From NCBI RefSeq assembly GCF_000143415.4, contig NW_003314378.1, forward strand, positions 136,110-200,109: a stretch of DNA of 64,000 bases, read 5' to 3'. This document shows, piece after piece, positions 8,076-39,516 of the stretch; positions within the stretch are counted from its first letter, which is position 1, and the number at the start of each line of letters is the position of its first letter. The position numbers and the translations under genes are program-made. The notes beneath the pieces were generated by a model. That model had not been told where the DNA came from. It did not search any database and saw nothing but the letters and a program-made list of their open reading frames with translations. The DNA is from Selaginella moellendorffii. Taxonomy: Eukaryota; Plantae; Lycopodiophyta.

Positions 8076-9070
8076 GTGATTCTTGCCAGATCGTCTGGGA
8101 GTACTGATCTTCGCCGAGCACCTCAAGATGAGAGGGGGCAGATTTCTCAACTCTCTGCGGCAGCTAGCCAGGCAGCCAGTGAGCAACACGCCTTTGATTC
8201 GCAACGCATTCGAGCTGGGGCACTGCGTTTTCAAGCCGATCAAGCATGTATGTCACCGCTGTCCAAGGAGAAGCAGTACTTTTTGATCGGGCTCTCGTCG
8301 TCGATGAAGCAGCAGCACGCTGCTGCCACGAAGAACTTGCTGACTTTCACACACATCAAGAACAGCAGCTCGGCCGCTGCTATGGTGCAAGAACCTCTGG
8401 AAGATATCCGGTGGAGGACAATGTGGTTCCTCCTGCACTGGAAACATCTTCTCCAGCAGAGCAAGTTTGTGATGCTGGGATTTTACTGGGGCGTGTGTTT
8501 CGGCAAGCCGAATGATGTTGGGTCGAAGATTTGGAATTCCTTTTGGGTAAGTTCGTATGTTTTTTGAGTCCGATCATTGATGGTTCTAGCCATCGGAGAA
8601 CCGGATAATTGAAGCTGAGGTGAGTATCGACATAAACAAGCACAGGAACCCAGAGAATTTCTCCGACCAGTTTGCGAGGCTGGCCGTGATGGCTCTAAGA
8701 TTTCCCACCGACTTGCTCTTTCGGGTGATGCTGAACAACCATTTCTAAAGTTTCATATAAGTTTGACATCTAAAGCAGTAAGAGTTTTGGCTTTCTCATT
8801 TTTCTTCTTTACATTTCTCACGCTCGCTTTTGCTCTCTCGTTATTGCAGCAACGTTACATATGTTGAGCGGCAATGCTAGAAACCATCTCTGGTGTTCTC
8901 GGAATGGTTGGGGGGATGGTTAGTCTCTGAGGCGAGTAGAGCACAGTGGAGGGTGGATCAAGGCTTTTATGGAAGAAGCAGAAAACAAACAAATGCATGA
9001 CATTCATGGAGCTGTCCAAACCATCGTGGCAGGAAGGGGCCCTAGTTTTTACTGCTTAAGGGATGTTTAT
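8076..9070 (+). pseudogene. Unidentified coding-like remnant with frameshifts
   Basis: GC-rich, coding-like overlapping ORFs (8083-8286, 8076-8567) followed by short GT-AG introns. No family recognised. Confidence 0.25.
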
Positions 9071-9074
9071 GAAG

Positions 9075-9300
9075 CAATCAGGACTTAGATAATTTGGCGA
9101 GGAAAAAGAAAAGGAGCTAGAACAGTAGGAACACAGACCCAATATAAACCCCGAATTTTTGTTAATATTATAAGTACTTAGAGGTAAGAGAGTTATGTTA
9201 GATCAATCGGTAAGTGGTAATTCACCACCACAATATGGAGGTGGTATATAAATTCCCAATAAAAAAATAATTAAAGTTAATGGTTATGGCTAATTAATAT
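9075..9300. repeat. Third (direct) copy of the inner part of the palindrome arm
   Basis: aatcaggacttagataat…gaggtaagagagttatgttagatc…tggttatggctaattaata matches the reverse complement of ~10860-11090 and directly repeats ~10635-10860. Confidence 0.75.
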
Positions 9301-10033
9301 GGCTAAGGCCATACTTGAACTTTAGAACAACCCAAGCAGAATGCATAACACATCAAGAAGGAGAAATGCCAAGGACACAACCACTGCCTACAAATACCAT
9401 TAAGATTCACAAAGAGATAACCACCACAATAGAGCACAGCAAAGAATAGTAACACCAAGAACTATTTCACCTGGATGCTAGGTTCTTGCCACTGCACCTT
9501 CAGCAATATGCATTGAAGAGCTTCATCAAGAGGCAAAGGCAATAGAAGGATCACTAGTAAAAGAAATGCTAAAGGCTCAAAGAGAAGTAGAGGAAGACAC
9601 ACCACCTCTAGTTGGGGAAAGTGTTCCACCCAGTCTAGCCACTACATGAGGGGCAAAGATAAGCTGAGGGATACCCAAGATAAACTTCCATTGCCACTCC
9701 TTAGTAGTGCCAACAATGATGACCGCCAAAACCACACTAATCCTATTCCTCCTACCACCCATCTTTCTTCTTTTTCCCTCCAATTATTACAATTGCTATT
9801 TTTTTTATCTTTTCCTGTTCTAGGTTTATGAAGAACAAGGCAAGCATCTCCATCCGAGTGCTCCACGGGCGGGAATACAGGTGGAAAAAGAGTGCCAATC
9901 AAAGCTGGTTCATACAGAAAGGTTTAGGAGGAATCATCGAGGTATTTGCCAACAAGGCAGTTACCATAGATGGGCTGTTCCTCACCAACATAATCATGGC
10001 GATAGATGAGTACAAGAAGGTGATTAGAGTTTA

Positions 10034-11693
10034 TGGGAGGAACATCTGGCTTTCAACAGAGTTCTTCAACCAGGTATTTGATTATCCAGAATTCCAGGGA
10101 CACATGAAGAAGCCCAGCCAAACCATCTGACCAAGTGTGTATGGACATTTATTCAAAGAAACAACTACAGGTAGAAGAAAATAGAATATCCATCTCGCGA
10201 GAAGAAAGGACACCAAACGGGTGAAAAGCATCCAAGTTAGGGATTTTCCAGATGCACATGTTGACAGGCTTTGACCCCTCATGGCTTTCATCGGATGCAA
10301 GAAGGAGTTGAATACGATCCCGGCAAATATAATGTAGGCTTATGTGAGAGCAGAGAAAATGCAATCGGTGAACTAAGGTTGATTTTCTGGATTTCATTTT
10401 TCCGGGTGATTGCCACTCAAAAAAGTAGGATCTTAAGTAGTCAGAAAGGATTCACCGATTTATACCCGTATCTAGTAAGGATAGTAAAATACCTCGGGTT
10501 AACATCAGAGGACGAGTGGAATTTCCGACCCTTGTATGAACAGTTGGAGTACTTGCTGAAGAAGCAGATAGACGACTTCATCAACGGGGTAAAGAACAAT
10601 ACTAAAGGTTGGTACAAAATGCTACACTACATTAGTGATCAAGATTTGGATAGTTCAGCGAAGGAAGAAGAAGAAGAGCCAAAGCCGAAGTAACAAAAAA
10701 ATGGGGTTGACGTGGGCCATGAATCCCTGTCGATTCCATAAGTACCCAGAAGTAGGAAAGCCACGCCAAATCAACTGGTAGGTGGTAACCTACCACCACT
10801 TTACAAAGGTGGTATATAAATTACCTATCGAAGAGTAACCAAAGTTGGCGATTCTAATTGTATTAATTAGTCATAACCACCAATTTTGGTTTCTCCTTGA
10901 TAAGCAATTCATACATTACCTTCGCACTGTGGTGGTGGGTTACCACTTACCAATTAATCTAGCATAACTCTCTTACCTTTAAGTAATTGTGGGATCGACA
11001 GGGATTCAATACTTACATTAACTTTGTCTTTTTGTTACTCCAACTTTGGCTCCTCTCTTTTTTCTCTACCGAATTATTTAAGTCCTGATTACTGGTGTAG
11101 TGTAGCATTTTGTATAAACCTTTGGTATTGTTCTTCACCCCGTTGATAAAGTCGTCTATTTGCTTCTTTAGCAAATACTCCAATTGTTCATATAAAAGTC
11201 AAAAATTCCACTCGTCCTTTGATGTTAGCCCAAGGTACCTTGCTATCCTCGCTAGATATAGGTATAAACCAATGAATCCTTTTTGACCGCTCAAGATTCT
11301 GCTTTTTTGAGTGGCAACCACAAAAAAAAATAAAATCCAAAAGATCACCCCCTAATTCAGTAATTGCATTTTCTTTGCTCTCACATAAACCCACATTATA
11401 TTTACCGAGATCGTATTCAGCTCCTTCTTGTATCCAATAAGAGCTATAAGGTAGAAACCTATCATCATGTGCATCTGAAAAATTCCTGAGTTGAATGCCT
11501 TTTACCTTTTTGGTGTCCTTCCTTCTCATGAGATGGATCTTCCATTTTCTTCTACCTGCAATTATTTTTTTGAATAAATGTCCATACGCACTTGGTTAGA
11601 TGGTTTGGTTAACCTTCTTCATGTGTCCCTAGAATTCTGGATAATCAAATACCTGGTTGAAGAACTCCGTTGAAAGCCAAATGTTCCTCCCAT
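10034..11693. repeat. Giant imperfect palindrome, ~830-bp arms with almost no spacer, centre ~10862; probable transposon relic
   Basis: Position 10034 onward (atgggaggaacatctggctttcaacagagttcttcaaccagg…) is mirrored by the sequence ending at 11693. Mirrored ORFs 10271-10693(+) and 11188-11529(-) both encode QEG(V/A)EYD(P/L)GKYNVGLCES. Confidence 0.9.
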
Positions 11694-11731
11694 CCGTTGA
11701 AACCAATCACAATTGCTCCACTAAGAATTGC
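11691..11731 (+). pseudogene. Tiny remnant of a heparanase/GH79 C-terminus
   Basis: LKPITIAPLRIA versus LKPISVDSKQPITIAPLSIA in the intact gene at ~32647-32706. Differences are mostly at third codon positions. Confidence 0.5.
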
Positions 11732-11739
11732 CAAATCCA

Positions 11740-14700
11740 TGTCACTAGCTGCTTGTGCCTTGCATCAAAAACCAAAGCTGGACAGTGTCCTGTGGCAAAA
11801 CTTGGAGCACCTCCCTGATGGCCGCCACATTTCCCTGAGATCAAACAACACAAGTGTATAAAACGAGTGAAAGAGCAAAGGAAAACAATGCCAGTACCTG
11901 AATGTCAATATTGAGAACAATGTTTAGCTGGTGTGACTCAACACTAGAGTCCTTTCAAGACGCTACAGCACTCGCAAGGTTCGCAAGCGTCACCTTTCCT
12001 TCACTAGCTTGAGAGGCTAGACAAGAATCACGCATGCGTTCTGCATATTTGGCAGCAGCGTCTCTAGCATCATCAATCGTGTCACAGATTTCAAATTTGT
12101 ATCCAGCAACTGGTACACTACTCAGTCCAATCACCTGAGATAATCGCAGTCAGATGTCGATGCTAAAAGAACTTGAGCAAGAATCGAAGAAAACCTGCAC
12201 TGCGGTTGATGGACCAGCCTCATTGACCGACTTCCCTTTTCGTCAAACAATGCTCGCACCTGAAAACGTAAAAATAAGAACGTTGCTTCGGTAGCTATGC
12301 TTGATTAGAAGCTTACCTTTCCATAGCCTTCACCACAGAGAACCACGTCTCCTTTGCTTAGTGTACCATTTTGCACGAGTAACGTAGCAACTGGTCCCCT
12401 TGCTTGCTTCAATGATTGTGCCACTGGCCTCACGGTGAGGATTGGATCTCAAGTCTTGCAACTAGCGGGAAAGCAAGCAAACATGAGCTCCAAGCTACAA
12501 GTTTTAATGCACAGTACCTCGGCAACAAGCATGACCGTCTCCAGTGACGAATCAATGTTCTCTCCTGTAAGAGCACTAACCGAAACCATCTGCTCTTCTC
12601 CACCCCACTCTGGTGGAACTACACCCGCTTTTGCAAGCTCTTCCTTGACACGATCAACGTTTGCTCCCGGCTTGTCAATCTACAACGAAAGGAAGAGTTT
12701 AGTCACAAGAACGAATGATCTCATATACAAACAATACCTTGTTGATAGCTACGACAATTGGAACCCTGGCAGCTTTGGCGTGAGCTATTGCTTCCAAAGT
12801 CTGTGGACGGGTTCCATCATCTGCTGCTATCACGATAATTGCAATGTCTGTGATTCGTGCACCACGAGGTCGCATAGCACTGAAAGCGAGAACAAGAAAG
12901 CCTTTAGCATTTCCAAAGAAGACATGTACCTGATGCCCCGGTGTGTCAAGGAAAACACACGTTTGCTCCTCCCCATCGACTGTCACAGGCACTTGATATG
13001 CACCAATTGCTTGTGTGATTCCTCCAGCTTCTCCGGCAGCCACCTGAATCATGAATGCAGAGAACTTCCTACATGAGAAACAAAAAAGAAAAGAAAAGAA
13101 AAGAAAGAAAAAAGAAATAGTCTGTAGCACAAAACAACATCAAAGTGTCAAAAACAAAAAAGAAAGATCGAAATCAAAGTTCTCGTAATTACCTTTCCAT
13201 GATCAACATGTCCCATGACTGTTACCACTGGTGGACGTCTCTCCAGTGACTCCAACTCTTCTTCGTCGAGGAACTCCTCCTCCTTCTTGGCCATGTCCTC
13301 GACTTTGACAGAGCCGGCTTCGATAACTTCCACTTTGTATTCATTGCGCACAATTTTCACAGATTCTTCATCCAGCATCTGGTTGGTCGTCACTGCTATT
13401 CCCTTCGTGAACAAGACCTTGACAACGGCCGCGCCAGCTTACTCGCCAAGTCTCCACGGTCATTCCCTGCTTCCCCACCTCCAAAATCTCCACTTTCACC
13501 GGAGCCGAGGCCTTTGCAGCCTCTGCTCGCTCGGCTTTCCTTCTAGCCTTCGAGTGCTTCCTGCCGGACTCACACCTGAAATGCTGATACCAATCTCTTC
13601 CGCGTCGTCCATGGGATTCTCGTCACGAGCAACGGTTCTGCGCTTAGCTCCATCCATCACTTCCGATCTTTTCCGCTTGTCATCCCTGGCCTTGTTCGCT
13701 AAACCCGGCTTCGATGATGGCGGACCTCCAGCTCCAGTGTCTTTGACTTTGAGACCTGTCTGCTTCTTCGTTGCCTCGTCACTCTTTGTCGAAGAAGAGC
13801 CACCCGAAGGAGGAGGGGGAGGTGTAGCGCTCGGTTCCACCACCTTCCTGAAAGTATCCACTCATCTCGGTCCCTTGGGCGCCACCGGCGGTGCCGCTGG
13901 CTTTGGAGCAATCATCGGCTTCGCTGACATGAGAGCCTCTTTTCTCACAACGGGCGGAGGTCGCATCAAAGGTGGCGAGCTGAGAATCGGAGTTCTTGGT
14001 GGTGCTGAAAGTCCAGGAGCTCTAGCGATGACGGAGAAACTCCTGGAGATGGAGCCGGAGCCGGAGCTTGTGACGACGGAGAAACTCCTGGAGATGGAGC
14101 CGGAGCGGGAGTTTGTGGCGACGAAGAAACTCCTGGAGATGGAGCAGGAGCTGGAGTTTGGGACGACGAAACCCTTGGAAATGGAGCCGCAGGAGGAGCT
14201 TGCTTCGACGCTGATACATCTGTCTGTGGAGGAGCCTTTGGTAAGTCTTGGCTTACCTTCACAGCGGTCGAGCTCTCCGGGGGCTTTGGAAAATTCGTTT
14301 GTGGGGGAGTCTTTGGAGCAACGGGCTTGCTCTTCACAGCGCTGCTGTTAGCACCATTTACCGGCGTGAAGGATTGCTGCCTTCCCATCACCGGCCTAGA
14401 ACTTGGCGAATTCGTGGGAGGAGAATTCGCCAGCCTCTCCGCGCTCTGTAACACTTTGTCCAAGTTTTGCATAGCTCCACCGCCCTGGCCCTGCTGCGAT
14501 GGCGCGGAAGAAGAAGCATTCTCCCTGGGCCGATAAACTTGCGCAAAGCTACCACCACTTCCACTTCCTGGCCTTCTCATCTGGTTGCATTCGCAGGAGG
14601 AGGAGGCATCATCACTGGCTTGGGCCGCGAGAGTGGGATCATCGGCGTTGGCGATGGCTTGAGCAGCGGCATACTCTCACCATCGCTCGCAGCTCCCGCG

Positions 14701-15058
14701 CTGGGCTTGGCCGATTTGCCACCGCCATCGTCGTCGGCGGCACTGGCGCCATCGGCATCCAACACCCGGACGCGCTCCTCGGCAAATGCCACGCCTCCTG
14801 GAGCCGCCGCCTTGCCGGAGCCGCGATCTGAGCTGCGCGCCGGGGCTGGAGAGCCCGAAAATCGCCGGATGCAGCCGCGCAGTCGGCATCGCCCCTGGGC
14901 CGGCAGACGACGAGCTGCCCTCCCAGGGCACCCAATGCGGCGCTCATTCTTTCATCATAGCTGGAGGAGAGCCTCGCACCTTTGCCGCATAGGGTCGCCC
15001 CGGAGCATCCGGAAGAACCCTAAAACCCGGAGAGAGGATGTCTGTCGCCCCGACGCCA
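11740..15058 (-). pseudogene. infB: Chloroplast translation initiation factor IF-2 pseudogene, 3'-truncated
   Basis: [51 protein letters not shown]…[13 protein letters not shown]…VAINK and a long Pro/Ser-rich N-terminus. Several frameshifts (~14580, ~14020, ~13570, ~13450) and an in-frame TGA at ~13863. Confidence 0.9.
14028..14200. repeat. ~45-48-bp coding tandem repeat (SPGVSPSSQAPAPAP) inside the IF-2 pseudogene
   Basis: gacg(g/a)agaaactcctggagatggagc… occurs three times, plus one degenerate copy. Confidence 0.8.
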
Positions 15059-15249
15059 TAGCGCAATGTGGATATGCTCCACGGCATACGTGGCACTAAT
15101 GGCAGGCTCGGAGGCCTTTGCAAGGCCATCGCCCGTGCGGGACCTTGGGGTTTCCGGCGGTTGGCCGGCCCCACCTCTGTTTCCCCGCTCGGATGGTCAC
15201 AATAAAATATGCATTTGGTCAACGGTCATTATAAAATATTCGCTAGATT

Positions 15250-16560
15250 CGACTAGGGCTTTGATGCTCCAGAAATCGCGATCTGGAAATGGGCAGGAGC
15301 GTCCGAGAGGATGCGATCCACTGATATCGCGAATGCGGTGCTGGGGATGTACGCCAAGTGCGGGAGCATGGGCGAGGCATCCAGGTGCGCCGGCGCGATC
15401 TGGTGTCGTGGAATTCTCTCATCGCGGGAATTGCCGAGAATGGGCAATCGCCTCTCGCGTTGGATCTCTTCCAGATCTCTTCACTTCCTCGCGGCATTGA
15501 AGGCGTGCTGTGCCTTGGCATCGAAGGAGGAATCCACTGCCGCGATGGGCAAATAACTACACCGAGAAGCCTCGCGATTTGGCTGCGCGGACGACGTCTT
15601 CGTCGCCACCAACCTGATCGACGCCTACGCAAAATCTGGCAGCATGGAAGACGCGCAGAGAGCTTTCGATCGAGTGCCTTCGCCGGCCACGCTCCCAATC
15701 GAGATGGCGCTGCTGGGCTGCAAATCTTCTAGCGAATGGATCCTTGCTACACTCCAAACTCTCACACTTTCGTGGCGGTCTTGAGCTCTTGCTTGAGCAT
15801 CACCGAGAAGGAAGAAGAAGATCATGGGATGATTATGATCAAGGTGGTGGCTCTAGAGACTGCTATGGCGATCCATTCTCGAGCAGCTAAACACCACCAA
15901 ATGTGCTTGTTCGTGGCCAATGCTATGATCGAAGTCTACTCCAAGTGTGGAAGCATGGGCGATGCTCGTGGATGCCTTGCCGCGATGTGATCTAATCTCG
16001 TGGACGTCTGTCATGTCTGGATACGTCCACAACGGTGAGCCCGAGCTTGCCATAGCTCTCTTCGAGGACATGAAACATAGAGGCTTTGCTCCAGACGCTC
16101 CAGCTCTCGCAATTGCCCTGAAAGCTTGCGGCAGCTTGGCGTTGCTCAAGGCCGGGAAGAAACTCCATGCCGAGATTTGCTGGAGAGGTGGAATCCAATC
16201 ATCCTTGGCTCTGCTCGTAGCTCTCGTGGATTTCTATGGTCGATGCGGGAGCATGGGCGATGCCGAGCTCGTACTCTTGCAAGACTCCATCGCCAGTAGA
16301 GACATCACCGTGTAGAACTCTCTCATGGCTGGATACAGTCGCCAAGGAAAGATGGAAATGGTTTCTAGAACTTTTCACCGATTGTAGGACGAGGGCCACA
16401 AGCCTGATGCTGCGACGTTTGTCGGAATTCTCGTGGCTTGCAGCGGTGCCGGGCTGGTTGAAAGTGAGAAGAAGTGTTTCCATGCCATGAAAATCTTGCT
16501 CGCCATTGTTGCGGTCCTGCATGATTTGATGAGCTCCAAGTATTCTGCAATCCATTCCTA
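15250..16560 (+). pseudogene. PLS-class PPR pseudogene
   Basis: IANAVLGMYAKCGSM, RRDLVSWNSLIAGIAENG, DLISWTSVMSGYVHNG and ALVDFYGRCGSM in shifting frames with internal stops. Confidence 0.85.
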
Positions 16561-17603
16561 AAGCCTCCGATCAAACAATTTCATTTCATCAGAACGGTTG
16601 AGCGTGCTAAGCTCAACCGTTATATTTGAGCATATCAAATATAATGTCTTATAATCGATTTGAGCAGATGCCACTCATGGGCATATGCAATCCAAGCAAC
16701 TGCCATCTTGAAGAACTGATGTTATAGTTATGCATAGGCATTCATTTTAAATAAACTGCTGCTTAAAACAATAGTAAAATAAATTTTTATAGTTGATTAA
16801 TCAATCATCCTATCTTTTATCTCAGGCAGAATAATATCTATGATGCAAAAAAAATGACAATTATAAAAAAAGGACATCTTATTCAGCCACACTCTATAAA
16901 TTAACTAAGACCTGGAGCAACCTTAGCTCTGGAAATCGTAAGTCCATAGAATGCCATATTAATATTAACCTCTAAAGGGCCTTTTAGGGCAACAATAAAT
17001 TGAAGATTGGCAGTTCAACACAGTGGGTGTTCTTTCGAATTCCCTCTTGGATTCTTAGTTGATCTCAGTTTCTTGATCTTGCTCCTTGCCAGTTGCTTCA
17101 GGTATAGAGAGATTTTCTTTGGTCATCTTTGGTACACCTTTGGTCAGCAACAAGTGCAAGCCTTGGGTTCTGCAAACTGCACAGAAACTATTCAAGTTAG
17201 CAACAAGTGCAAGCCCCAAGGCATCCAAGTGGGTTGTGCAAACTGCATAGAAACTAGGATAGCCTTCTCTCATCAATCGTCAAGTAAACCAAATAAACTT
17301 CTAACAAATAGCTTGTTGTGGTGGACTCACACTAAAAAATGTGAATGTGGATGTGGGCATAAAAGATGATGTGGGGTGTTGTGAATGTGACTGTGGGTAT
17401 CAAAAACTATTTGTTGGTTAATCCTTTCAGATATTTTTTCTTTATTGCCACAATGACAAGAAGTTAATATTGTTAAACCCTTTATCAATCCCTTTGAGTT
17501 ACCTAGGCATTTCATTTAGACCAGACGAGCATAAGGATGAAATTCCTACATACTATTAGCTAAACATATTTAGCCTAGTAAGGAGTTTTTGTTTCATTAT
17601 GTC

Positions 17604-21295: not shown

Positions 21296-21717
21296 ATGAT
21301 TGAGTTTACAATTTAGGAGCTTACAATTAAGTGGTAGATTGCATTTTGCATTTCATCAGACTTTATGAGAGTAGGGAGTTCTTATTAATCTTGATTTGGT
21401 CTTAGTAGCTTAATTTGAGCTTAGTTTAGCTGTTTAAAGTTAAGATATTAGTACCTATATTATAACTTTGTCTATAAGGAGGTTTTGTACTAATATGAGT
21501 CCATCTCATGATGTTGGAACGAGGAAGAAGACGACTGCAATGCGGCACTTGGCAGAAGTGATCCTTCTTCTTGGGGGATCATCCATCGATTCTGTGGTAG
21601 CACAGCTTCCATCAGATGGATTGATCGAGCAATTGCTTACTTATCAGGTAAAGAAATTCCAAAATCTCCTCATTTTATTTTTCCCTTCCATCTTGGCTAA
21701 GGTGCATGTGAGCGGCG

Positions 21718-23225
21718 ATGGCGCTCTCTCTCCAATTCCCGGTCTCCACGCCCCGGCAAGCATCACTGGAGATTTCAAAGCTAACGCCCGGCTACATTGC
21801 ATCGTCCTTCTCCTTGCAATCTCCTTCCACTTCTTCGCTCCATTCTCTCGGCACAAGCAGCAGCATTGCCATGGCCGTGAAGAAGAGCTCGAGAAGATGG
21901 AGAGCAGCGAAGACGGTGGCGATGGCGGCAGCCGCTAACGAGGTGTCGAATCGCAAGGTACTGATTGTCAACACCAATTCCGGTGGACACGCCGTGATTG
22001 GCTTCTGGCTTGCCAAAGATCTCGTCGCTGCTGGCCACGAAGTTACTGTCATGACTGTCGGTGAGGAGAGCTCGGATAAGATGAAGAAGCCACCATTCTC
22101 GCGGTTCTCGGTATGTTCTTGACCATGTCTTCTGTATATTCGTGCTTCCTCTTCCGTTTTTTCTTTGCAGGAACTGCGAGATCTTGGAGTATCAACTGTG
22201 TGGGGCGATCCGAAAGACGTTGGAGCAGCCGTGGGTGGCAAATCATTCCATGCCGTTTTGGACAACAATGGAAAAGATTTGGATGCTGTGAAGTATGTGA
22301 TCATCGTTCTCGTCTTAGAGAATGAAGTTGGCTGGTTTTTTTGCAGGCCTGTTGTGGACTGGGCGAAATCTCAAGGTGTGGAGCAATTCTTGTTCATCAG
22401 CAGCGCAGGAATCTACAAAACTAGTGACGAGCCTCCGCACCTCGAAGGGGTAAGAAACCTCCACTTTCTCTCTTTTCTTTCTCGCTTCTCAGCTCAAGCG
22501 AATTGCTGCAAACAGGATCCTGTGAAAGCGGACGCAGGCCACGTCGGTGTGGAGGACTACATTTCAAAATTGGCTTTCAAGTTTTGCTCCTCGTTTAGAC
22601 CCCAGTACATGACTGGCTCCGGGAACAACAAGGACTGCGAGGAATGGTTTTTCGACAGTAAGTTTTTCCTCCTTCCGTTCGTGTTTCAAGGGATCATGAA
22701 AACTTCTTGGACAGGAATTGTTAGAGACAAGCCCGTCCCAATACCTTCTCCGGGCATCCGAGTGACAAACATTGCTCATGTATCCGACTTATCGAGCATG
22801 ATAACACTGGCGATTGGGAAACCGAGCGCGTCCAACGCTACCATCTTCAATGCTGTGAGCGACCACGCTGTTACTTTCGATGGTCTCGTCCGGTTGTGCG
22901 CTAGAGCTGCAGCGAAAGAAGCGAAGATCGTCCACTACGACGCCAAAGCTCTGGGAATCGATGCGAAGAAGGCATTTCCTTTCCGAAACATGGTATGCCC
23001 AACCTTTGATTATTTTGGTTCTCATATTTTTCTTTCGTTGCTTGCGCTGATGTATAGCATTTCTATGCGGAACCAAGAGCAGCAAAGGAGAAGCTCGGGT
23101 GGACGAGCTCGATAAATCTCTCAGAAGCATTGAAGGAGAGGTACGAGGAGTACATCAAAATTGGGAGAGACAAGAAGGATATCAAGTTTGAGATCGATGA
23201 TACCATTCTGAGCAAAGTCGGATAG
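21718..23225 (+). CDS. CSP41a: Chloroplast stem-loop binding protein CSP41a (NAD-dependent epimerase-like), 6 exons
   Basis: Ser-rich transit peptide, then [48 protein letters not shown]|[10 protein letters not shown] and [18 protein letters not shown] introns restore the frame. Confidence 0.95.
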
Positions 23226-23450
23226 ACATTGCTTTGCCAAATGGTTCTTCCATACGACGTGGTCAGTAGTATCTCGTCTCAGAGAAACAGTGATGTCACT
23301 TTCAGATCGAAGGATGTTTGAGCTTCTCTGAGTTTTTTCTGAAAGCCTCGCGATTTCTTCCTGACTTGCTAAACTACAAATGAAGGTACTCTATAATCGG
23401 GAAAAAGGTCTACGTTGGCTTACGAGGACAATTAGGGTTGGTGAAGCTTG

Positions 23451-23819
23451 ATGGATCTCGAAACCAGATGTAGGATTTTAGTACACGATCTCCTCAACTT
23501 CGAGAGCGAGGAGGCGCAGGCGAGGCTTTCCTTCGATCCAGCAGCGCGATCTTTCCTCTCTCGGGCTTATTTTGCCCCAGAGGAGGTGGACAAACTCAGC
23601 AAGACGCAGACTAGCGAGGGCAAAACATTGGGCGAGGCGCTGGAGGAGGTTTTGGAGCGGAAGAAGGGCAAGGGGGACTACCAGCTGTGCACGTCACACG
23701 ACATCGCGCCCATCTTGCAACAGGCGCTCGGCATCCACAGGGATTTCCAAAAGAATCCAGCGTTTAAGAAGGCCTTGAAGGCATTCAACAAGGAATGGAA
23801 GAAGAGAAAACCTTTGTAA
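23451..23819 (+). CDS. Intronless 122-aa protein of unknown function
   Basis: Clean ATG-TAA ORF with GC-rich third positions, a telo-box-like ttagggtt just upstream, and globular-looking sequence (RILVHDLLNF…YQLCTSHDIAPIL). Confidence 0.65.
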   Translation: MDLETRCRILVHDLLNFESEEAQARLSFDPAARSFLSRAYFAPEEVDKLSKTQTSEGKTLGEALEEVLERKKGKGDYQLCTSHDIAPILQQALGIHRDFQKNPAFKKALKAFNKEWKKRKPL

Positions 23820-23847
23820 AGACTGCTTTGTAAAAATTACAAGTAAT

Positions 23848-23912
23848 CGGCCAGAATCGAACCCGTAACGTATGCTTTGAGAAACCGAGGTCTTAACCGG
23901 CTGGTCTAAGTT
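23848..23912 (-). ncRNA. Degenerate tRNA-Glu-like sequence (pseudo-tRNA/SINE head); second copy ~24935-24998
   Basis: Minus strand TAGACCAGCCGGTTAAGACCTCGGTTTCTCAAAG…CGGGTTCGATTCTGGC has A-box and B-box and a CTC anticodon-like loop, but the stems are broken. Confidence 0.45.
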
Positions 23913-23960
23913 GTTTTAGTGAGCTAGCGAACCAGAACAAGGGCTAGTTAAAAGCAAGAT

Positions 23961-24070
23961 TTTGCATAAAAGTCCTTGTTGAGTGGACCCTTCGGGATCG
24001 AACCCGGGTCTTGTACAACGGTTTACCTCTACACTTACCTGATAGCCATCATCTCAGCAACCGGGTTCCA
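23961..24070 (-). ncRNA. tRNA-like (Gly-like 3' half) structured element; near-identical second copy at 25040-25149
   Basis: Minus strand TGGCTATCAGG (A-box-like) … GTACAAGACCCGGGTTCGATCCCG (B-box, resembles plant tRNA-Gly-GCC GTACAGACCCGGGTTCGATTCCCG), followed by TTTT. Not a canonical cloverleaf. Confidence 0.45.
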
Positions 24071-24089
24071 GTATTAAAAAAATCATACC

Positions 24090-24476
24090 ATGTACTTGAA
24101 CCATGTGACAGGGGTCTTTGCGAAATCCATGGCGTTTTTGTTAGATCGCCCACCAGACGAGATTATCCCCCGCATTCGTGCTGCTCGGCGTTTCGTCCTT
24201 GGCAAAGCCCCCTTATGGGTTGTGGAGTTAGAAGGACTGAAGGAATCGATCATCGTGGTAATGGATCGTCAGAGTTATGGCCTGGGTTGCAATAGAAACT
24301 CGCAGAGCAATCTCCACAGCCACAGGAGCTTTGGGATCTTCTGCTGGTGTGAATCTCATCAGTCCCAAAACTCCACGTTTTGGCAATCCAACGAAACCTG
24401 TAGCGTGTGGCCATACAAACGAACATACCTCGGTGTGATCACTCACTCGAAAATCTCTACTTTACGAGTGGAGTGA
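24090..24476 (+). CDS. Hypothetical ORF (128 aa; alternative ATG 24129) immediately upstream of the TPP aptamer
   Basis: Open ATG-TGA frame with no THIC or THI1 similarity visible in the frames I translated. May be a decayed gene. Confidence 0.25.
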   Translation: MYLNHVTGVFAKSMAFLLDRPPDEIIPRIRAARRFVLGKAPLWVVELEGLKESIIVVMDRQSYGLGCNRNSQSNLHSHRSFGIFCWCESHQSQNSTFWQSNETCSVWPYKRTYLGVITHSKISTLRVE

Positions 24477-24601
24477 ATCATCTTCCGAGTGTGTGGTTCT
24501 CGGCTGCTACTCTCTGTTTTTTCAGTAAGCATTCTTCTGTTTGCTACTACTTGTTTGGTAATTTGGTTTGCAAGCTTAAGCTCTTGAAACTGATGAAATC
24601 T

Positions 24602-24706
24602 GGCACCAGGGGTGCTTGCCCTGAAAAGAGTCTTTCTTCTGAAAGGGTAGGCTGAGATGAGACCCTCACGACCTGATCAGGATAATTCCTGAGAAGGGAG
24701 TGTGCC
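24602..24706 (+). promoter_or_regulatory. Plant-type thiamine pyrophosphate (TPP/THI-box) riboswitch aptamer, variant
   Basis: GGCACCAGGGGTGCTTG…GGCTGAGA…ACCCT…ACCTGATCAGGATAATTCCTGAGAAGGGAGTGTGCC. P1 GGCAC/GTGCC, P2 GGGGT/ACCCT, P3 GCTTGCCCT/AGGGTAGGC, UGAGA motif, P4 CCT/AGG, P5 CAGG/CCTG. Colinear with the plant THIC 3'UTR aptamer. Confidence 0.92.
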
Positions 24707-24780
24707 GACGCTGTATTTTATTTTTCTGTGCAGTCGCACAGAATCGAACTTGTGCACCGTATCTCAGATATCCAAGTTGA

Positions 24781-24860
24781 ATCGAGGATGATAATGGGCA
24801 ACCGAGCGCGTCCAACTTCAATGGTGTGAGCGACCACCCAAAGCAGGCATTTCCTTCCCG
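24781..24860 (+). pseudogene. Second degenerate CSP41a fragment
   Basis: atcgaggatgataa…accgagcgcgtccaac…ttcaatggtgtgagcgaccac…aggcatttcctt matches 22791-22985 with large deletions. Confidence 0.75.
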
Positions 24861-25556
24861 AATTTAAATTGAATTATTCTACTTTGTAAAAACTTATTGT
24901 TTCCTTTATTCTTTATTCTATTTTAAGTTAGTATTGGCAAGAATCGAACCGGAAACGAATGCTTTGAGAAACCGAGGTTCTAACTGACTGGTCTAAGTTG
25001 TTTTACTGAGCTAGCGAGGGCTATATAAAAAGCGAGAATTTTGCATAAAAGTCCTTGTTGAGTGGACCCTTCGGCATCGAACCCGGGTCTTGTACAACGG
25101 TTTACCTCTACACTTACCTGATAGCCATCATCTCAGCAACCGGGTTCCAATAAAAAAATATCATACCATGTAGTTAAACAAGTACTGGACGAGATTATCC
25201 CGCTCGTTGCAAACGGGATCTAGATGGATCGATCACGCTCGATCGCCTCGCCTCTTCTGCTCGACCGCGTAGCGAGCAGCCTCAACCGATCCAATACAGC
25301 GTTCAAGAAGCTCGCGATTCAAGATGGAGAAACCTCAAGGCGGTCTAAATGCTTGGCCCCTCTCGGCAGACCCACAAATTTTCAGCCAGCGACAGAAATA
25401 AGGGCCACAACATTTTCTAACCCCCAGCTCCATTTTCTTGAGAAATCGTCGCCTCTTCCTGCGTTTGCTGGCACATTTTTGTGGAACTGAGAACGAGGAG
25501 AAGAAACAATCCTCAATGCTTGAGATATATTTTTCTTCTCTGGGTTGTGGTGTTTG

Positions 25557-27377
25557 ATGCGTGCTTATGCCACTGATTTAAGCTTGGATTTTCCAAAGTG
25601 CGCCGCTCTCTTGCGCCAGTGCACCGGACTAGCCAGCCTCCGCGAGCTCCACCACAAGATCGCTGCTGCCAATTTGGATGCGCACACGTTTTTGGGCAAC
25701 CATCTCGTCCAGATGTACGGCAAGTGCGGGAATACGGCGGAGGCGTTTCTCGCTTTCGAGCGCATACGGAACAAGAATCGCTTCTCGTGGAACATCGTTC
25801 TCACGGCATATGCCCAAAATGGGCATATTCTGGAGTCGAAATTTCTCTTTGAAAAGATGCCGCAGAGAGACCTTTACTCTTGGAACTCGATGATTGCGGC
25901 GCTAGCACAAAACGGATGTTTGGAAGACGCGTTTGCGCTGGCCGAGAAGATGCCCGAGAAAGATACTGTTTCTTGGAACACGATACTTGCGGCATATGCC
26001 GATTCAGGAAGCTTGCCTATGCTAAAGACGATGTTTGATCGAATGGAGAAGCGCAATGCCGTCTCCTGGAATGCAATCATCTCTGGATATGGCCAAAATA
26101 ACAGTGTGGAACTCGCAGGAAAATGTTTAGCAAAAATGCCGCATAGAAATCTCTTGTCTTGGAATGCCATGCTCGCGGCATATGCCCAAAATGGGTATTC
26201 TGCTATGACAGTAAAGCTCTTTGCGGAAATGTGCGTCGAGGGATTTGAACCCGACGCTTTTACCTGCGTGAGCGTATTGGACGCCTGCGATCGCTCCTTG
26301 GGCGAGGAGATCCACGACGAGGTGCGATTCAATGGCTGGGATTCCAGCGTCTTTGTTGGTACGGCGCTCGTGGCCATGTACGGGAGGTGCCAGTGTGTGG
26401 ACCGTGCAAAGGAGGTCTTTGGTTCGATGCCCGAGCGCAACATTGTGTCATGGAACGCGATGCTTACCGCATATGCCGATAATGGGCATCTGGAAGATAC
26501 CATGGCTGTGTATGAGCATATGCCAGCTAGAGACCTTGCATCTGGAAATGGCCTTGTGTCTGGCTATGCGCGTTTAGGGCAGTGGGAGAGCGCCCGTGCG
26601 GCATTTTGGTCTCTCCCCGAGAGAGATGTGGTTTCCTGGAACACGATGATCGCGGCGTGTGTCGAGAGGGATCGTCCGCAAGAATCGTTCGCGCTCTTCC
26701 GGCAGATGGATCTCGATGGCGTTGCGCCAAACAGGATCACGCTTGCGAGCATCTTGAGCGCCTGCGATGGAAGCCAGGAAAATATTGCGCACGCGCTCAT
26801 CGCTGGGCTGCGGGATCTCGAGCCGGACGCGATGATCGGCACGGCGCTGGTGATCCTGTATGGCCGGTGCGGCAGCTGCGAGAAATCCTTGGAAATCTTC
26901 CACCAGATGGAGGAGCCGCGCGATCCAGGCGCTTGGAATTCGATCATCGCGGCGCTGGCACGCAATGGCCACACCGATGCGGCGATCGCGATGCTCCGCC
27001 GGTTGGAATGCGAGGGGATCGGGCCGGATTTCGCCGTTTTCAACAGCATTCTCTTTGCATGCAGCCATGGCGGATCTCTCTGTGAGGGCTACGCGCATTT
27101 TTTGATCATGGCTGGGGATTACGGCATCGCGGTCAGCTCCAGCCATTTCATGTGCCTGATCGATCTGCTGGGCCGCGCCGGGAAGCTGGAAGCCGCGGAG
27201 GAGCTGATCGATTCGATGCCATTCGAGGCGGACGGCCTGGCCTGGACGATTCTCCTCAGCTCTTGCAAGAGCCACAACGATGTGGAGAGAGGGGCCATGG
27301 CGGCGATGAGAGTGGCCGAGTTCGAATCCTGGGAAAGCTCCACTTATGTGATGCTCAGTAGCATCATGAGGAATTAG
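25557..27377 (+). CDS. PLS-E class pentatricopeptide repeat protein (organellar RNA-editing factor type), intronless
   Basis: ~606-aa ORF of PPR motifs (…VSWNAMLAAYAQNG…) ending in E-domain CLIDLLGRAG…AWTILLSSCKSHNDVERG…STYVMLS, with no DYW domain. Confidence 0.93.
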   Translation: MRAYATDLSLDFPKCAALLRQCTGLASLRELHHKIAAANLDAHTFLGNHLVQMYGKCGNTAEAFLAFERIRNKNRFSWNIVLTAYAQNGHILESKFLFEKMPQRDLYSWNSMIAALAQNGCLEDAFALAEKMPEKDTVSWNTILAAYADSGSLPMLKTMFDRMEKRNAVSWNAIISGYGQNNSVELAGKCLAKMPHRNLLSWNAMLAAYAQNGYSAMTVKLFAEMCVEGFEPDAFTCVSVLDACDRSLGEEIHDEVRFNGWDSSVFVGTALVAMYGRCQCVDRAKEVFGSMPERNIVSWNAMLTAYADNGHLEDTMAVYEHMPARDLASGNGLVSGYARLGQWESARAAFWSLPERDVVSWNTMIAACVERDRPQESFALFRQMDLDGVAPNRITLASILSACDGSQENIAHALIAGLRDLEPDAMIGTALVILYGRCGSCEKSLEIFHQMEEPRDPGAWNSIIAALARNGHTDAAIAMLRRLECEGIGPDFAVFNSILFACSHGGSLCEGYAHFLIMAGDYGIAVSSSHFMCLIDLLGRAGKLEAAEELIDSMPFEADGLAWTILLSSCKSHNDVERGAMAAMRVAEFESWESSTYVMLSSIMRN

Positions 27378-27411
27378 CTAGGGTTCTTGGATTGGCCCTA
27401 GGCCACAGTGA

Positions 27412-29543
27412 ATGGCGGACTGGGGAGACGACAACGTCCAAGAAGGGGAGGAAGAGGATGGATCGGAGGATTTCGAGCTTCCGGAGGAGGAAGAAGGCGC
27501 TGGATCGCAGCAGAATCACGGCAGTGACGAGGAGAGGAGCAGCAGCAGTGGCAACGAGGAAGGGAGCAGCAGCGGTGAGGAGAATCAAGGCGATGGCGAT
27601 GATCCGGTGGAGATTCAGGATGATCTTTTCGGCCCCGATAACGAAGATTATATGCGCACTACTCCGCAGAGCCAGCTTCCCATACCAAGTAAGAGCGATT
27701 GTTCTTCTTCTCCCTTTTTATTTTTGTTGGTCACACACATTTTTTGTGTAGTCCTTCCCGAGCCCCGGAATGACCAAAGGAATGATCACGAGTACCGGCG
27801 AGGAAATCCTCGTGGAGAAAGAAATTCATCCTTCTACTCTGGCGGTTTCAAGTCGAAGGATCTCGTTGCTGACCTGAAGCTTGGCCCTCCTGGCCACTTG
27901 GACGAGACCTTGCGCATTGCATGCCCCCCTTTTCAAGAGGTAATCGTCAGGTTTGTGGTTCATTTTTTCTCCACTTACGTAGGCCTTGATTAACAGTGGA
28001 GAAATTTGGCTTGCATGGTGGTTCTTTGGAGCAGCCAAATCAGATTTGCTGTTACAGTCGAACACCGGATGGAACCGTTTACTATGACGAAAGGTGTCTG
28101 GTGAGTGCGGTGCTTTTGCGAGTGGTTCTCTAAATAATTGAGTTTTCTTTCCTTTTTTTTTCCCCTTGTCGACAGAGAAAATTCAGGAGGAGAGTTCTCT
28201 CAAGTTTTGAGGCCGACTTAAACGAGGGATTTGACTCTTTTGTTCAGAAGAATGATGGTTGGTGATCTGTGATTTTGCGTGGTTGAGTTTCTTTCTGATT
28301 CGCGAGCATTGCAGATTCGGAATCAAGTGCTTTCGGCGACTTGCTGGCGTGTGTGCGAACAAAATTGACTTCTTTCAAAGACATTCATTTTGTTGTAAGT
28401 TTTCACAAATCTCTACAAATTACCATCACCCACCGTTTTGTTGGCGCAGACATTTCGGAACAACTTAAATAAGATACTGGGGACGACCTATAGTAGACGC
28501 GACGCCTGGGAGATGGGCGTGCACAAACGTTCTGGAACAGTGTATTTGGATTGTCGTAAAACTCCTGAACCTCCCCAGACTGAGCTTCAACAACGACAGT
28601 AATCACAGCGCTTCTTCCTCCACTTTTTACTTACGAAAAACTGGTTGTTGCAGATGTTATTGGGGCTACAAGTATGAGGAGGTTGCGACTGAAAATCCTC
28701 AACGAGATCTCTACGAGATGTCGGGCGACGCAGGGCCGCCTGTCGCTGTGGATGCGAACGTTGAGTTTTGTACAGTTGTTAGAACCAAACTTGGTCCCCA
28801 TCGGATCATTATGGGTGCCGAGATCGACTGCTATGACGTTGGCTCCGACGGTACGAAGCGATACACTGAGTTAAAGACCAGTCGCGAGGTGAGTGCTTGT
28901 TTTTATGTTCTCTTCGACGTTTAGGTGTTATGCTCGCTTGCAGTTGGACAAGAGAAGTTTTGAAAGATTCGAGAAAGAGAAGCTTTTGAAATTTTGGGTG
29001 AGAGTCACTTTCTTAGATATAATTTTCTCTACCTAACTTGCTTACCATCGCAGATACAATCGTTTTTGGTTGGAGTTCCACGAATTGTATGCGGCTTCAG
29101 GTAATGTTGTTTCTTTCCCTCCTTTTCGGGCAGAGAAATGAATATCTTGATCTGGTCATGAAAAACAGGGACGACAATGGTAGGCTTTTGCGCTCTGACA
29201 TGATGCTCACTCAAGAAATTGCACGTAAGATGAAACAAAAGCATTACTGGGAGGTAAGGCATCTACGTTTTCAGCGATTCAAGTCAGCAATGGTTGTGAC
29301 AGGGAGGTGTGTGCCTGGCATTTGCGGATAGAGTCCTCTGCTGGCTCTATGGCAGCGTAAACGATGGTAACCACAGAGATCTCTTTCTCTCATTTTGGAT
29401 TTCACTGAGCTCCAAAACTTGATGCAGGAGGAGATTATACTCTTCGTTACATTCCCAATAGCAACAGGATTGAGCTAGTGAACTGTGATTCCTGTCCAAG
29501 AGTTATCAGCGAGCACATTGAGCTCCTGGAATCCTCGAGCTAG
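27412..29543 (+). CDS. DXO1: DXO/RAI1-family decapping (deNADding) exoribonuclease, plant DXO1 type, multi-exon
   Basis: Acidic N-terminal extension with [11 protein letters not shown], then [62 protein letters not shown] and [17 protein letters not shown]. Confidence 0.9.
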
Positions 29544-30394: not shown

Positions 30395-32757
30395 ATGGGC
30401 AGAGCGTTGCTGTTCTTGAGCTGCTGGATCTTTCTCCTGGGCTGGATTCACGAATGTGGCAGCGCAGCAGCAGCAGCGGCAGTCCCGGGCAGATCCAAGT
30501 TTCTGGCGGAGAAGATCGTGGCGAAGGCGGCGGCGGTGGAGATCAACACGAGCAACACAATCTGGCGGGTGTCAGAGGGATTTCTGTGCGCCACGCTCGA
30601 TTGGTGGCCCGCGGAGAAATGCGATTATGGGACTTGCAGCTGGAAGGATGCCTCGCTCCTCACCATGGCAAGTTTGCTCGCCAAATCCCTCCTTTTATCT
30701 CGATTTCTTCCTTGCTCATCAGATTTCTCCATGTTTGGTAGGATCTCAAGCACCCACTGCTGGAAAATGCCATCAAAGGTGAGTGAAGAGTACAGGGAAT
30801 TCCAGCTCTCAGCCACCAAAGTTTTGGTTTTTTCTCGCAGCTCTCTATCCACTCACATTGCGCCTGGGCGGATCGCTCCAGGACCGATTGTTCTACAAAG
30901 TCGGGAGGAGCGCGCAGCGGCCATGCTCCAACTTCGTCAAGCAGCAAAATTCCATCTTTGGATTCTCCGAGGGCTGCCTCAACATGTCGCGCTGGCTGGA
31001 GCTCAACTCACTGTTCCAAAGGACAGGGTATAGTTAGTAAGCAAAACTTTCCCTTCATCTCCTCCCTTAAATTCGCCTCTTCTTCGTGCCAGAGCTTCTG
31101 TGGCATTTGGATTGAATGCTCTCAATGGCCGCCAGCGCGTTTCCAAAGGGGTTTACTCAGGATCCTGGGATTCGACAAATGCCGAAGATTTCATCAAGTT
31201 CACCCACGACAGTAAAATCGCCATCGCGGCTTGGGAGCTTGGTAAGATCTTCACAACTTTTGCACTTACAGCAAATGCCCAGTCAAGGTAACCATTTGAC
31301 GTTTGCATGTTTCGAATTTCCAGGCAACGAACTTAGTGCCAATGGAGTTGGCACGACGATCAACTCTCGTCAGTACGCCACCGACGTGAAATCTCTTCGC
31401 GAGATCATCGACGGGATATATGGCGACCAGATCGACAGGCCGATGGTGGTTGCTCCCGATGGATTCTTCGTGGCGGCGTGGTATCAGCAGCTCTTGCAGT
31501 CGACAGGGCCGCGAGTGCTGGACGCAGTGACGAGGCACATTTACAACCTTGGAGCTGGCGTCGATCGCCACCTCATCCAGAAGATTCTAAGCCCGACATA
31601 TCTCAGCCAAGAGGCCGGAGCTTTCAAGCAAATGCGTGACACCGTCTCGAGATATGGTCCCTGGGCTCAAGCCTGGATTGGAGAGGCCGGAGGAGCATAC
31701 AACAGCGGCCAGCACCTTGTCAACGATGCGTTCGTGTCTAGCTTTTGGTACGTAAAATTCCTCTCTTTAGCGTTTCTTCTTTCGGTCTTTTCCTTTCTTT
31801 CTGATTGAGTGAAGATAGTTCTATTGTTGTGAGTTTCGATGGTTGAAGGTCCCGTTCCTGGTTTTGGAAGATAGAAGCTTGGTGTTTCTGGTTGTGCTTT
31901 TTTGGTAGATTAAGAATCAAGATGGTGTTTTTCCTTGTTTGTTTTGTTTTTTTTTTTTTTTGTCTCTGTGGTTCAATGTGTGGTTTTTTGGAATCAGGTA
32001 TTTGGACCAGCTTGGCATGGCTGCATCGCACAGCACTGCTGTCTACTGTCGTCAAAGTCTCGTAGGCGGAAACTACGCACTGCTTCGGACAAATAGTTAC
32101 AATCCCAATCCGGACTACTACAGGTGTGTCTTGTGTTCTCGTGCGTTAAGTTCTTTCTTCACTGTTTAACTTATAGTTTTTCTTTTTGTTGCATTCGTCA
32201 ACTGGGCTGCTAAGAGTCTCCCTTTTGTCTATGGTGTTTTGCCAGTGCTCTTTTGTGGAAACAAGTAATGGGCAATGACGTCTTGCCTGCGACAGTGGTC
32301 AGCGAGACTTATCTTCGCGCATATGCACACTGTGCAAAATCAAACTCGGTAAAGAGATTTGGAAAAGCTCCTTTGGATCCACCACTAAAGTTGTATTTCT
32401 TCTTTGTTTTCTTTGTTTTCCATTCATCCCCAGGGTGGACTAGCCGTTCTTCTCATCAACATGAGCAACTCCACGGTCTACAGCGTGAGGCTCAAACTCT
32501 CGGGCTTTGCAAAGAGCAGCAAAGGCTCTAGTCGAACGCCCCGGCTTGAATACCACTTGAGTGCTCCCCTGACGGATCTCCAGAGCCAGCGCATACACCT
32601 TAACGGCAAACTCCTCGACGTGACTCCAGATGGCAACATCCCCGTTCTGAAGCCAATCTCGGTGGATTCCAAGCAGCCCATCACGATTGCCCCGCTCAGT
32701 ATTGCATTTGTTGTGCTGCCTGATGCTAAGCTCCAGGCATGCACCATAATTGAGTGA
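30395..32757 (+). CDS. Heparanase-like protein (glycoside hydrolase family 79), secreted
   Basis: Signal peptide; CATLDWWPAEKCDYG, LRLGGSLQD, WELGNELS, AWIGEAGGAYNSG, FWYLDQLGMAA, CRQSLVGGNY. Confidence 0.95.
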
Positions 32758-39444: not shown

Positions 39445-39516
39445 TATCAGAGACAGGTTTCGATCCTGTGACCTGTGGGTTATGGGCCCACCACGCTTCC
39501 GCTGCGCCACTCTGAT
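39445..39516 (-). tRNA. trnM-i: Initiator tRNA-Met (CAT)
   Basis: ATCAGAGTGGCGCAGCGGAAGCGTGGTGGGCCCATAACCCACAGGTCACAGGATCGAAACCTGTCTCTGATA: A1-U72, GGG/CCC anticodon stem, ATCG T-loop, followed by an oligo-T terminator. Confidence 0.97.

Follow-up and report, generated by a model that had tools for sequence, protein, structure and literature searches.

Riboswitches of eukaryotes are known from very few genes, so that an aptamer found apart from any thiamine gene looks like a possible new target. The closest described systems are the TPP riboswitches of land plants. According to the available text of PMC10226581 (citing Bocobza 2007, Wachter 2007), the land-plant TPP riboswitch lies in the 3'UTR of THIC, where it controls a 3'UTR intron and, through it, the choice of 3' end. 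Non-seed plants, including lycophytes, are described in the same text and in that of PMC11521341 as having a second TPP riboswitch, in the 3'UTR of THI1 (PMC10226581, citing Bocobza 2007; PMC11521341). In the portions available of these two sources, THIC and THI1 are the only land-plant genes reported to carry a TPP riboswitch, and both versions occur in lycophytes.

The locus considered here lies in the lycophyte Selaginella moellendorffii, in a stretch of 64,000 nucleotides (the window; GL377682.1:136110-200109 of assembly GCA_000143415.2), and all coordinates without a locus name are positions in it. The other haplotype is represented by the syntenic scaffold GL377681.1, on which the corresponding locus is called L002. 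Evidence from reads comes from Logan contigs only: those of two RNA runs (X3 and X7), of a DNA run (X8) and of a run of undefined type (X1). A preliminary description of the window, made from the letters alone, had recognized a TPP aptamer with an intron and offered two readings: a riboswitch cassette taken over by a new gene or an ncRNA, or a THIC or THI1 3'UTR copy that had been captured or orphaned. The second is favored by the present analysis, because homology to an expressed gene (the parent) starts abruptly at 24431, where a repeat ends. We put at roughly three in four the probability that the aptamer segment is an orphaned, truncated duplicate of the riboswitch 3'UTR of a gene located elsewhere in the genome.

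The aptamer and its two alleles

The window sequence is a member of RF00059 by both score and fold. The Rfam search returned a single TPP match in the 64 kb, at 24598-24717 on the + strand, which covers the full model (1-105) and reaches 54.6 bits where the gathering score is 54.3, with an E-value of 6e-8 over the whole window and 1.7e-9 over 1.7 kb. The aptamer is of the eukaryote type, having a long P3 (26-nt extension) and no P3a. When folded alone, 24598-24712 gives -46.1 kcal/mol and the canonical P1-closed three-way junction. In this minimum-free-energy fold, P1 is formed by 24601-06 and 24702-07, and both the P2/P3 arm, which is the pyrimidine sensor, and the P4/P5 arm, which is the pyrophosphate sensor, are recovered. 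None of 200 shuffles matched the folding energy (z -3.5), and the CUGAGA of J3/2 is kept. The aptamer fold that had been claimed for 24602-24706 is therefore borne out.

Within the aptamer the two haplotypes differ at a single position, 24692 (+), where the window reads CCUGAGAAGGGA and the other haplotype CCUGCGAAGGGA. The latter is also the Rfam consensus; the conserved CG of the P4/P5 bulge is thus intact in L002, whose aptamer scores 59.5 bits, and is AG in the window allele, at a cost of 4.9 bits. Since the other haplotype carries the consensus CCUGCGAAGGGA, the difference is read as a C-to-A substitution in the window allele. In published TPP riboswitch structures, the P4/P5 bulge helps to hold Mg-pyrophosphate. 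Departures from the consensus in J2/4 are common to both haplotypes. The sequence resembles the land-plant THIC riboswitch, as portrayed in the available text of PMC10226581, in being an RF00059 aptamer of the eukaryote type situated 3' of a stop codon, and the window allele differs from it by the A in place of the conserved C of the bulge.

Absence of a host gene

From the letters, neither a THIC nor a THI1 coding sequence had been recognized in the window, and at the level of protein domains this holds: Pfam finds neither ThiC nor Thi4 in the scanned ORFs of at least 110 aa, which numbered 78 of 89, the ones left out overlapping the CSP41A or the PPR gene that flank the locus. A match to Thiaminase_I-like_N at 31116-31805 was rejected as spurious, as its 20.1 bits are below the cut-off of 27 and it lies beneath a strong match to GH79 (glycosyl hydrolase 79); we consider it a fold-level echo and not a thiamine gene.

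The "unrecognised ORF" upstream of the aptamer, to which the preliminary description had drawn attention, does exist mechanically at 24090-24476. It is, however, a chance ORF within a multi-copy repeat, as is another at 24277-24438; it has no Pfam match, and in the other haplotype it is broken, being shortened to 59 aa. No ORF at the aptamer locus is conserved between the haplotypes, three ORFs that span the junction, taken from the window and from L002, had no record on exact look-up, and neither scaffold has an annotated gene between CSP41A and the PPR gene. In both haplotypes the sequence upstream of 24431 is repeat, and the window aptamer thus does not follow a THIC or THI1 coding sequence as part of its 3'UTR. 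A decayed THIC or THI1 copy had been envisaged upstream as well, and what survives there is only the last two codons and the stop of the parent. In this the window copy is unlike the THIC riboswitch, which accompanies a THIC coding sequence.

Neighboring genes

The gene upstream of the aptamer (21718-23338, +) was identified by protein search and cluster look-up as copy 2 of CSP41A (SELMODRAFT_133157, P0242). RNA contigs, which extend as far as 23338, bear out its five GT..AG introns of 54-66 nt. This gene does not host the riboswitch. Three members make up the CSP41A cluster, one of them on GL377681.1. The gene is found twice on the window scaffold, at 21718-23338 and at 10001-11508 of a second region (L001), the two copies being 25.7 kb apart and 5% diverged, and once on GL377681.1 (L002 10001-11508). 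The single copy on GL377681.1 is preceded by the genes that precede copy 1 and followed by those that follow copy 2, and is a mosaic in its SNPs. At CSP41A the four runs carry letters like those of copy 1 and L002, not the window's. The difference in copy number would be explained by a tandem duplication in one haplotype, a deletion through unequal crossover or an error in scaffolding.

Just 3' of CSP41A, an ORF at 23448-23819 (+) is similar to the C-terminal third of a 307-aa ORF (344-aa called gene) at L001 12669-13592 (+). The two share the motifs CTSHD(I/V)AP(I/L)LQ and KAF(N/R)K(E/Q)W(K/T)KK. The window ORF belongs to no Pfam family and its RNA depth is near zero. The 344-aa gene of L001 was considered as a candidate THI1 and rejected; it has no Pfam match, and its tail is like the ORF at 23448-23819. 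L001, which surrounds the second CSP41A copy some 25 kb upstream, also gave no TPP match.

Downstream of the aptamer lies a PPR gene of the E-motif class (25557-27377, +; Pfam), which is annotated in the other haplotype with 606 aa. Its frame is intact in the window (606 aa), yet the gene called on the window scaffold has 285 aa (L003 14803-15660). Over 26114-26390, one X7 contig is identical to the window and another is 4.7% diverged. A search with the PPR protein for orthologous loci returned only distant paralogues (27-38% identity). Further along the window there is a tRNA-Met (CAT) at 39445-39516 (-), found by Rfam with 56 bits and also by ARAGORN.

The breakpoint at 24431-24434

The interval between the two genes contains two copies of one repeat family. 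TE1 (23846-24434) is a truncated copy, and TE2 (24933-25245), shorter and in the same orientation, is 87.6% identical to TE1 over 24933-25179. Contig depth in the DNA run is 240-690 over 23964-24434 as against about 21 in the single-copy flanks, which establishes that the family is multi-copy, and it is about 500 over TE2. Judged by DNA contig depth, the family has some 10-30 copies. It has no match in Pfam, ARAGORN or Rfam, and a tRNA-like nature, proposed by eye from GGTTCGATCC-like motifs on the minus strand, was unsupported by ARAGORN or by Rfam at E up to 1.

DNA contigs from other copies of the repeat fit the window as far as 24434, where they diverge from it (...ATCATCCTCGCC...), and the RNA contig of the parent fits it from 24431, five bases before a TGA. 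The two fits overlap in CGGT (24431-24434, +), so that the breakpoint carries a 4-nt microhomology. The other haplotype has the identical junction between repeat and UTR (...ACATACCTCGGTGTGA), and because both haplotype scaffolds share it, the junction is neither an assembly error nor a haplotype-specific deletion. Nor is the boundary a splice acceptor, as no AG precedes 24431. The microhomology suggests double-strand-break repair or template switching as the joining event, not transposon capture by design, the mechanism being judged from this one junction. The segment is comparable to the gene-fragment duplicates joined by microhomology, such as filler DNA at break repair and template-switch chimeras, in its size of about 430 bp, its abrupt start within the last codons, its 4-nt overlap with a truncated repeat and its lack of coding capacity.

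A separate, expressed parent gene

An RNA contig of 746 nt (X3, record 14) has a depth of 1733, when CSP41A has 18-78. It fits the window over 24431-24733 with 9 substitutions and three insertions (1, 1 and 10 nt), the RNA contigs being about 97% like the window in this aptamer segment when substitutions are counted. The part of the 746-nt contig that precedes 24431, at least 398 nt, was not found in 21600-27500, and the last 30 nt of it occur nowhere in the window at up to 3 mismatches. RNA depth steps up just past 24434, from about 25 to 1733 in X3 and to 8,800-17,000 in X7. Across the boundary the contig reads ...TCGGCCGAAGACGACGAGACCACCGCCA|CGGTGTGA, which would encode ...SAEDDETTATV* in a frame, taken from 30 nt only, that meets the TGA at 24436-24438 (+). 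This TGA would then be the relic stop codon of the parent gene. Of the remaining two frames, one ends at 24474-76 and one within the aptamer.

At a number of places the RNA contigs depart from both haplotypes. Near 24449 they have AAAAA and the haplotypes AAAA; near 24460 they have TGGT or TAGT where the haplotypes have TGCT (L002) or TAC; after 24733 they have GTTTTATGATGA and the haplotypes GTTTTATGACGA or nothing; and they have GAGAATGATAATGAGA where the haplotypes have GAGGATGATAATGGG. From L002 they differ further in ATGATGA as against ATGACGA, and in three G/A differences within a 33-nt stretch that precedes CSP41A-like sequence. Because of these SNPs and indels, and because coding-looking sequence replaces the repeat upstream, the RNA contigs are assigned to a third locus, the parent gene, which lies outside the window, L001, L002 and L003. 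Our view of this locus comes from Logan RNA contigs alone (loose-end snippets), and de Bruijn contigs can be chimeric. DNA depth in X8 is just 19 over 24555-24751, which resembles one locus and not two at 90% similarity or more; partial coverage of the bin is a possible explanation.

The similarity to the parent extends beyond the aptamer. Further RNA contigs run from 24775 through 33 nt into CSP41A-exon-like sequence, which fits the CSP41A gene from 22819 at 90% or more and is about 100 nt long, as estimated from bin depth. The window has a decayed CSP41A exon piece at 24763-24862 (+), matching 22775-22987 with four internal deletions, and this piece appears to have been copied together with the riboswitch UTR. 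A search with the 72-aa CSP41A exon peptide for parent 3'UTR ORFs gave best matches that were 76% identical and from other species. The orphan copy landed beside a real CSP41A gene, for which coincidence and homology-guided ectopic repair are both possible.

Splicing of the riboswitch intron

The intron had been predicted from three signals, and all of them are present where they were claimed: the 5' splice site CA|GTAAGC (24525|24526), a CTGAT at 24590-94 and the 3' splice site CACCAG|G (24609|24610), whose AG (24608-09) sits inside the aptamer. They define a riboswitch-associated 3'UTR intron of 84 nt (24526-24609, +). In two X7 RNA contigs the fit to the window starts at 24610, and directly before it they carry the exon end of 24525, ...GGCTGCTACTTTCTGTTTTTTCA (...TTTTTTCA). 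Because these contigs join 24525 to 24610, the predicted intron is removed in RNA. The junction that the preliminary description had proposed to look for in RNA was therefore seen, but in contigs that bear the letters of the other allele or of a paralogue, the parent, and not those of the window allele.

In its GT donor, its acceptor AG at the 5' edge of the aptamer and its short 3'UTR intron, the cassette resembles that of THIC, the junction being used in RNA of the parent copy. The two may be compared also in the masking of the 5' splice site. The best masking-helix duplex between the aptamer and the 5' splice-site region had -27.4 kcal/mol and was equaled by 395 of 1000 shuffles, in a test of low power. 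With RNAduplex, against shuffles and genomic controls that give little power, complementarity beyond chance between the 3' half of the aptamer and the 5' splice site was not found, so that in the window copy, as far as this low-power test can detect, this feature of the THIC riboswitch has no significant counterpart.

Haplotype comparison and decay

The order of elements in L002 is as in the window, namely repeat, junction, aptamer, CSP41A piece, TE2 and PPR gene, with 95% identity overall. The window allele has lost more of the UTR. In the relic 3'UTR exon segment that leads up to the 5' splice site (24439-24525, +, delimited by comparison with the haplotype and the RNA), it is without one base near 24460 and 10 nt after 24501 that are present in the other haplotype and in the parent RNA. 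Altogether, stretches of 10, 12 and 9 nt shared by L002 and the RNA contigs are absent from the window, which amounts to three deletions and 31 nt of UTR, with joints including 24501/02 and 24733/34. Because L002 keeps these stretches, the window allele is considered the more decayed of the two.

The aptamer and the intron differ little between the haplotypes, at 1 of 120 and 2 of 84 positions respectively, with no indels in either, as against 24 of 589 (about 4%) in the repeat. This could reflect constraint, the difference not being significant (Poisson p about 0.07); gene conversion from the parent would leave such a pattern just as readily.

Proposed origin and present state of the aptamer segment

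We propose that a segment of about 430 bp (24431 to about 24862) was copied from the extreme 3' end of a riboswitch-regulated parent gene. The duplicate would comprise the last two codons, the stop (in the frame given above), the 3'UTR with its intron and aptamer, and the adjoining piece derived from a CSP41A exon. A 4-nt microhomology would have joined it to the truncated multi-copy repeat, by way of break repair or template switching. In both haplotypes the duplicate would thus have come to lie between CSP41A and the PPR gene, without a coding sequence to regulate, and the window allele would be decaying, as suggested by its three deletions and the C-to-A change in the pyrophosphate-sensing P4/P5 bulge. 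The highly expressed parent would use the cassette in the manner of the land-plant THIC and THI1, with removal of a 3'UTR intron whose acceptor AG is in the aptamer.

The orphan copy itself is probably silent. Among the RNA contigs listed, none bridges the junction of repeat and UTR at 24434, which is weak evidence because contigs drop rare variants. An X1 contig, from the run of undefined type, follows the L002 orphan copy over 24502-24880, so low-level transcription of the orphan may occur.

Identity of the parent gene

The depth of the parent contigs is 20-60 times that of CSP41A, contig depth being a poor measure of abundance, and the THI1 message is among the most abundant in plants. The acidic, SAE-containing tail of the parent presumably resembles THI1 C-termini, which is a lead and not a test. 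Because of the high contig depth and this likeness of the tail, THI1 is favored over THIC and would be the likelier parent. The parent is probably THI1, and THIC is a possible but doubtful candidate. The locus is also like the riboswitch of non-seed THI1 (THI4 family), as far as the available text describes it, in its lycophyte lineage, its 3'UTR position and the very high expression of the parent (Bocobza 2007; PMC11521341). It is unlike that riboswitch in that the window copy has no THI1 coding sequence, the link to THI1 being one that we infer for the parent.

It is unlikely that the orphan copy arose as described from a parent that is neither THIC nor THI1, in which case a new riboswitch-controlled gene of land plants would exist elsewhere in the genome. 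What is known of the parent protein is 11 C-terminal residues in the proposed frame, which leaves room for such a gene, as does the 3'UTR that runs into a CSP41A-exon-like piece, an unusual arrangement. Against it, the contig depth relative to CSP41A fits THI1, and the SAE tail presumably resembles THI1 C-termini. The available text of PMC10226581 and PMC11521341 also argues against it, since the land-plant hosts reported there are THIC and THI1 only.

Alternative readings of the locus

It is decidedly unlikely that the cassette has been recruited at its present location. It would then belong to a non-coding or repeat-initiated transcript, or to read-through from CSP41A, and its TPP-dependent splicing would regulate that transcript or the PPR gene. 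Both haplotypes keep the fold and the two splice sites, and divergence within the locus is lowest in the aptamer and intron, as such a function would have it; there is, moreover, low RNA depth (13-43) over the upstream repeat, in addition to the X1 contig (of undefined type) that follows the orphan copy. However, contigs of the repeat leave the window sequence at 24434, with no bridging RNA contig among those listed, and the roughly 40-fold jump in depth falls exactly at the breakpoint, as expected of a signal derived from the parent. A new host is also hard to find, since there is neither a haplotype-conserved ORF nor an annotated gene. The window allele has lost a conserved base of the ligand pocket along with the 31 nt of UTR, and the second copy of the repeat intervenes between the aptamer and the PPR gene. 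The suggestion of recruitment in the preliminary description is thus not supported, and the orphan copy is most likely a genomic relic and not a new riboswitch target.

That the window aptamer is instead the true 3'UTR of an expressed gene, with its coding exons distant (spliced) or lost from the assembly, is very improbable: the approximately 97% match in substitutions over 24431-24733 and the single-copy depth of the DNA run over the aptamer would suit it, but it conflicts with the want of an AG acceptor before 24431, the coincidence of the boundary with the end of a repeat family, the presence of the junction in two independently assembled haplotype scaffolds, the SNPs and indels that separate the RNA from both haplotypes, and the absence from all 64 kb of the last 30 nt of the upstream part.

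Significance

The orphaned duplicate indicates that the plant cassette as a whole, consisting of donor, intron and aptamer, can be duplicated in one piece of a few hundred bases and come to lie beside unrelated genes. The two haplotypes, with C or A at a conserved base of the ligand pocket, provide a natural pair for comparing TPP binding. Genome-wide Rfam counts of plant TPP aptamers include relics of this kind. There is an outside chance that the orphan is transcribed, by read-through or from the repeat next to it, and is a TPP-binding (at least in the allele that keeps the CG) and thiamine-responsive ncRNA or a regulator of the PPR gene, or alternatively that the parent is other than THIC or THI1; if the orphan were active, a plant riboswitch cassette would have been caught in the course of recruitment to a non-thiamine locus. 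Copies such as this one are the raw material that recruitment of the riboswitch to new hosts would need.
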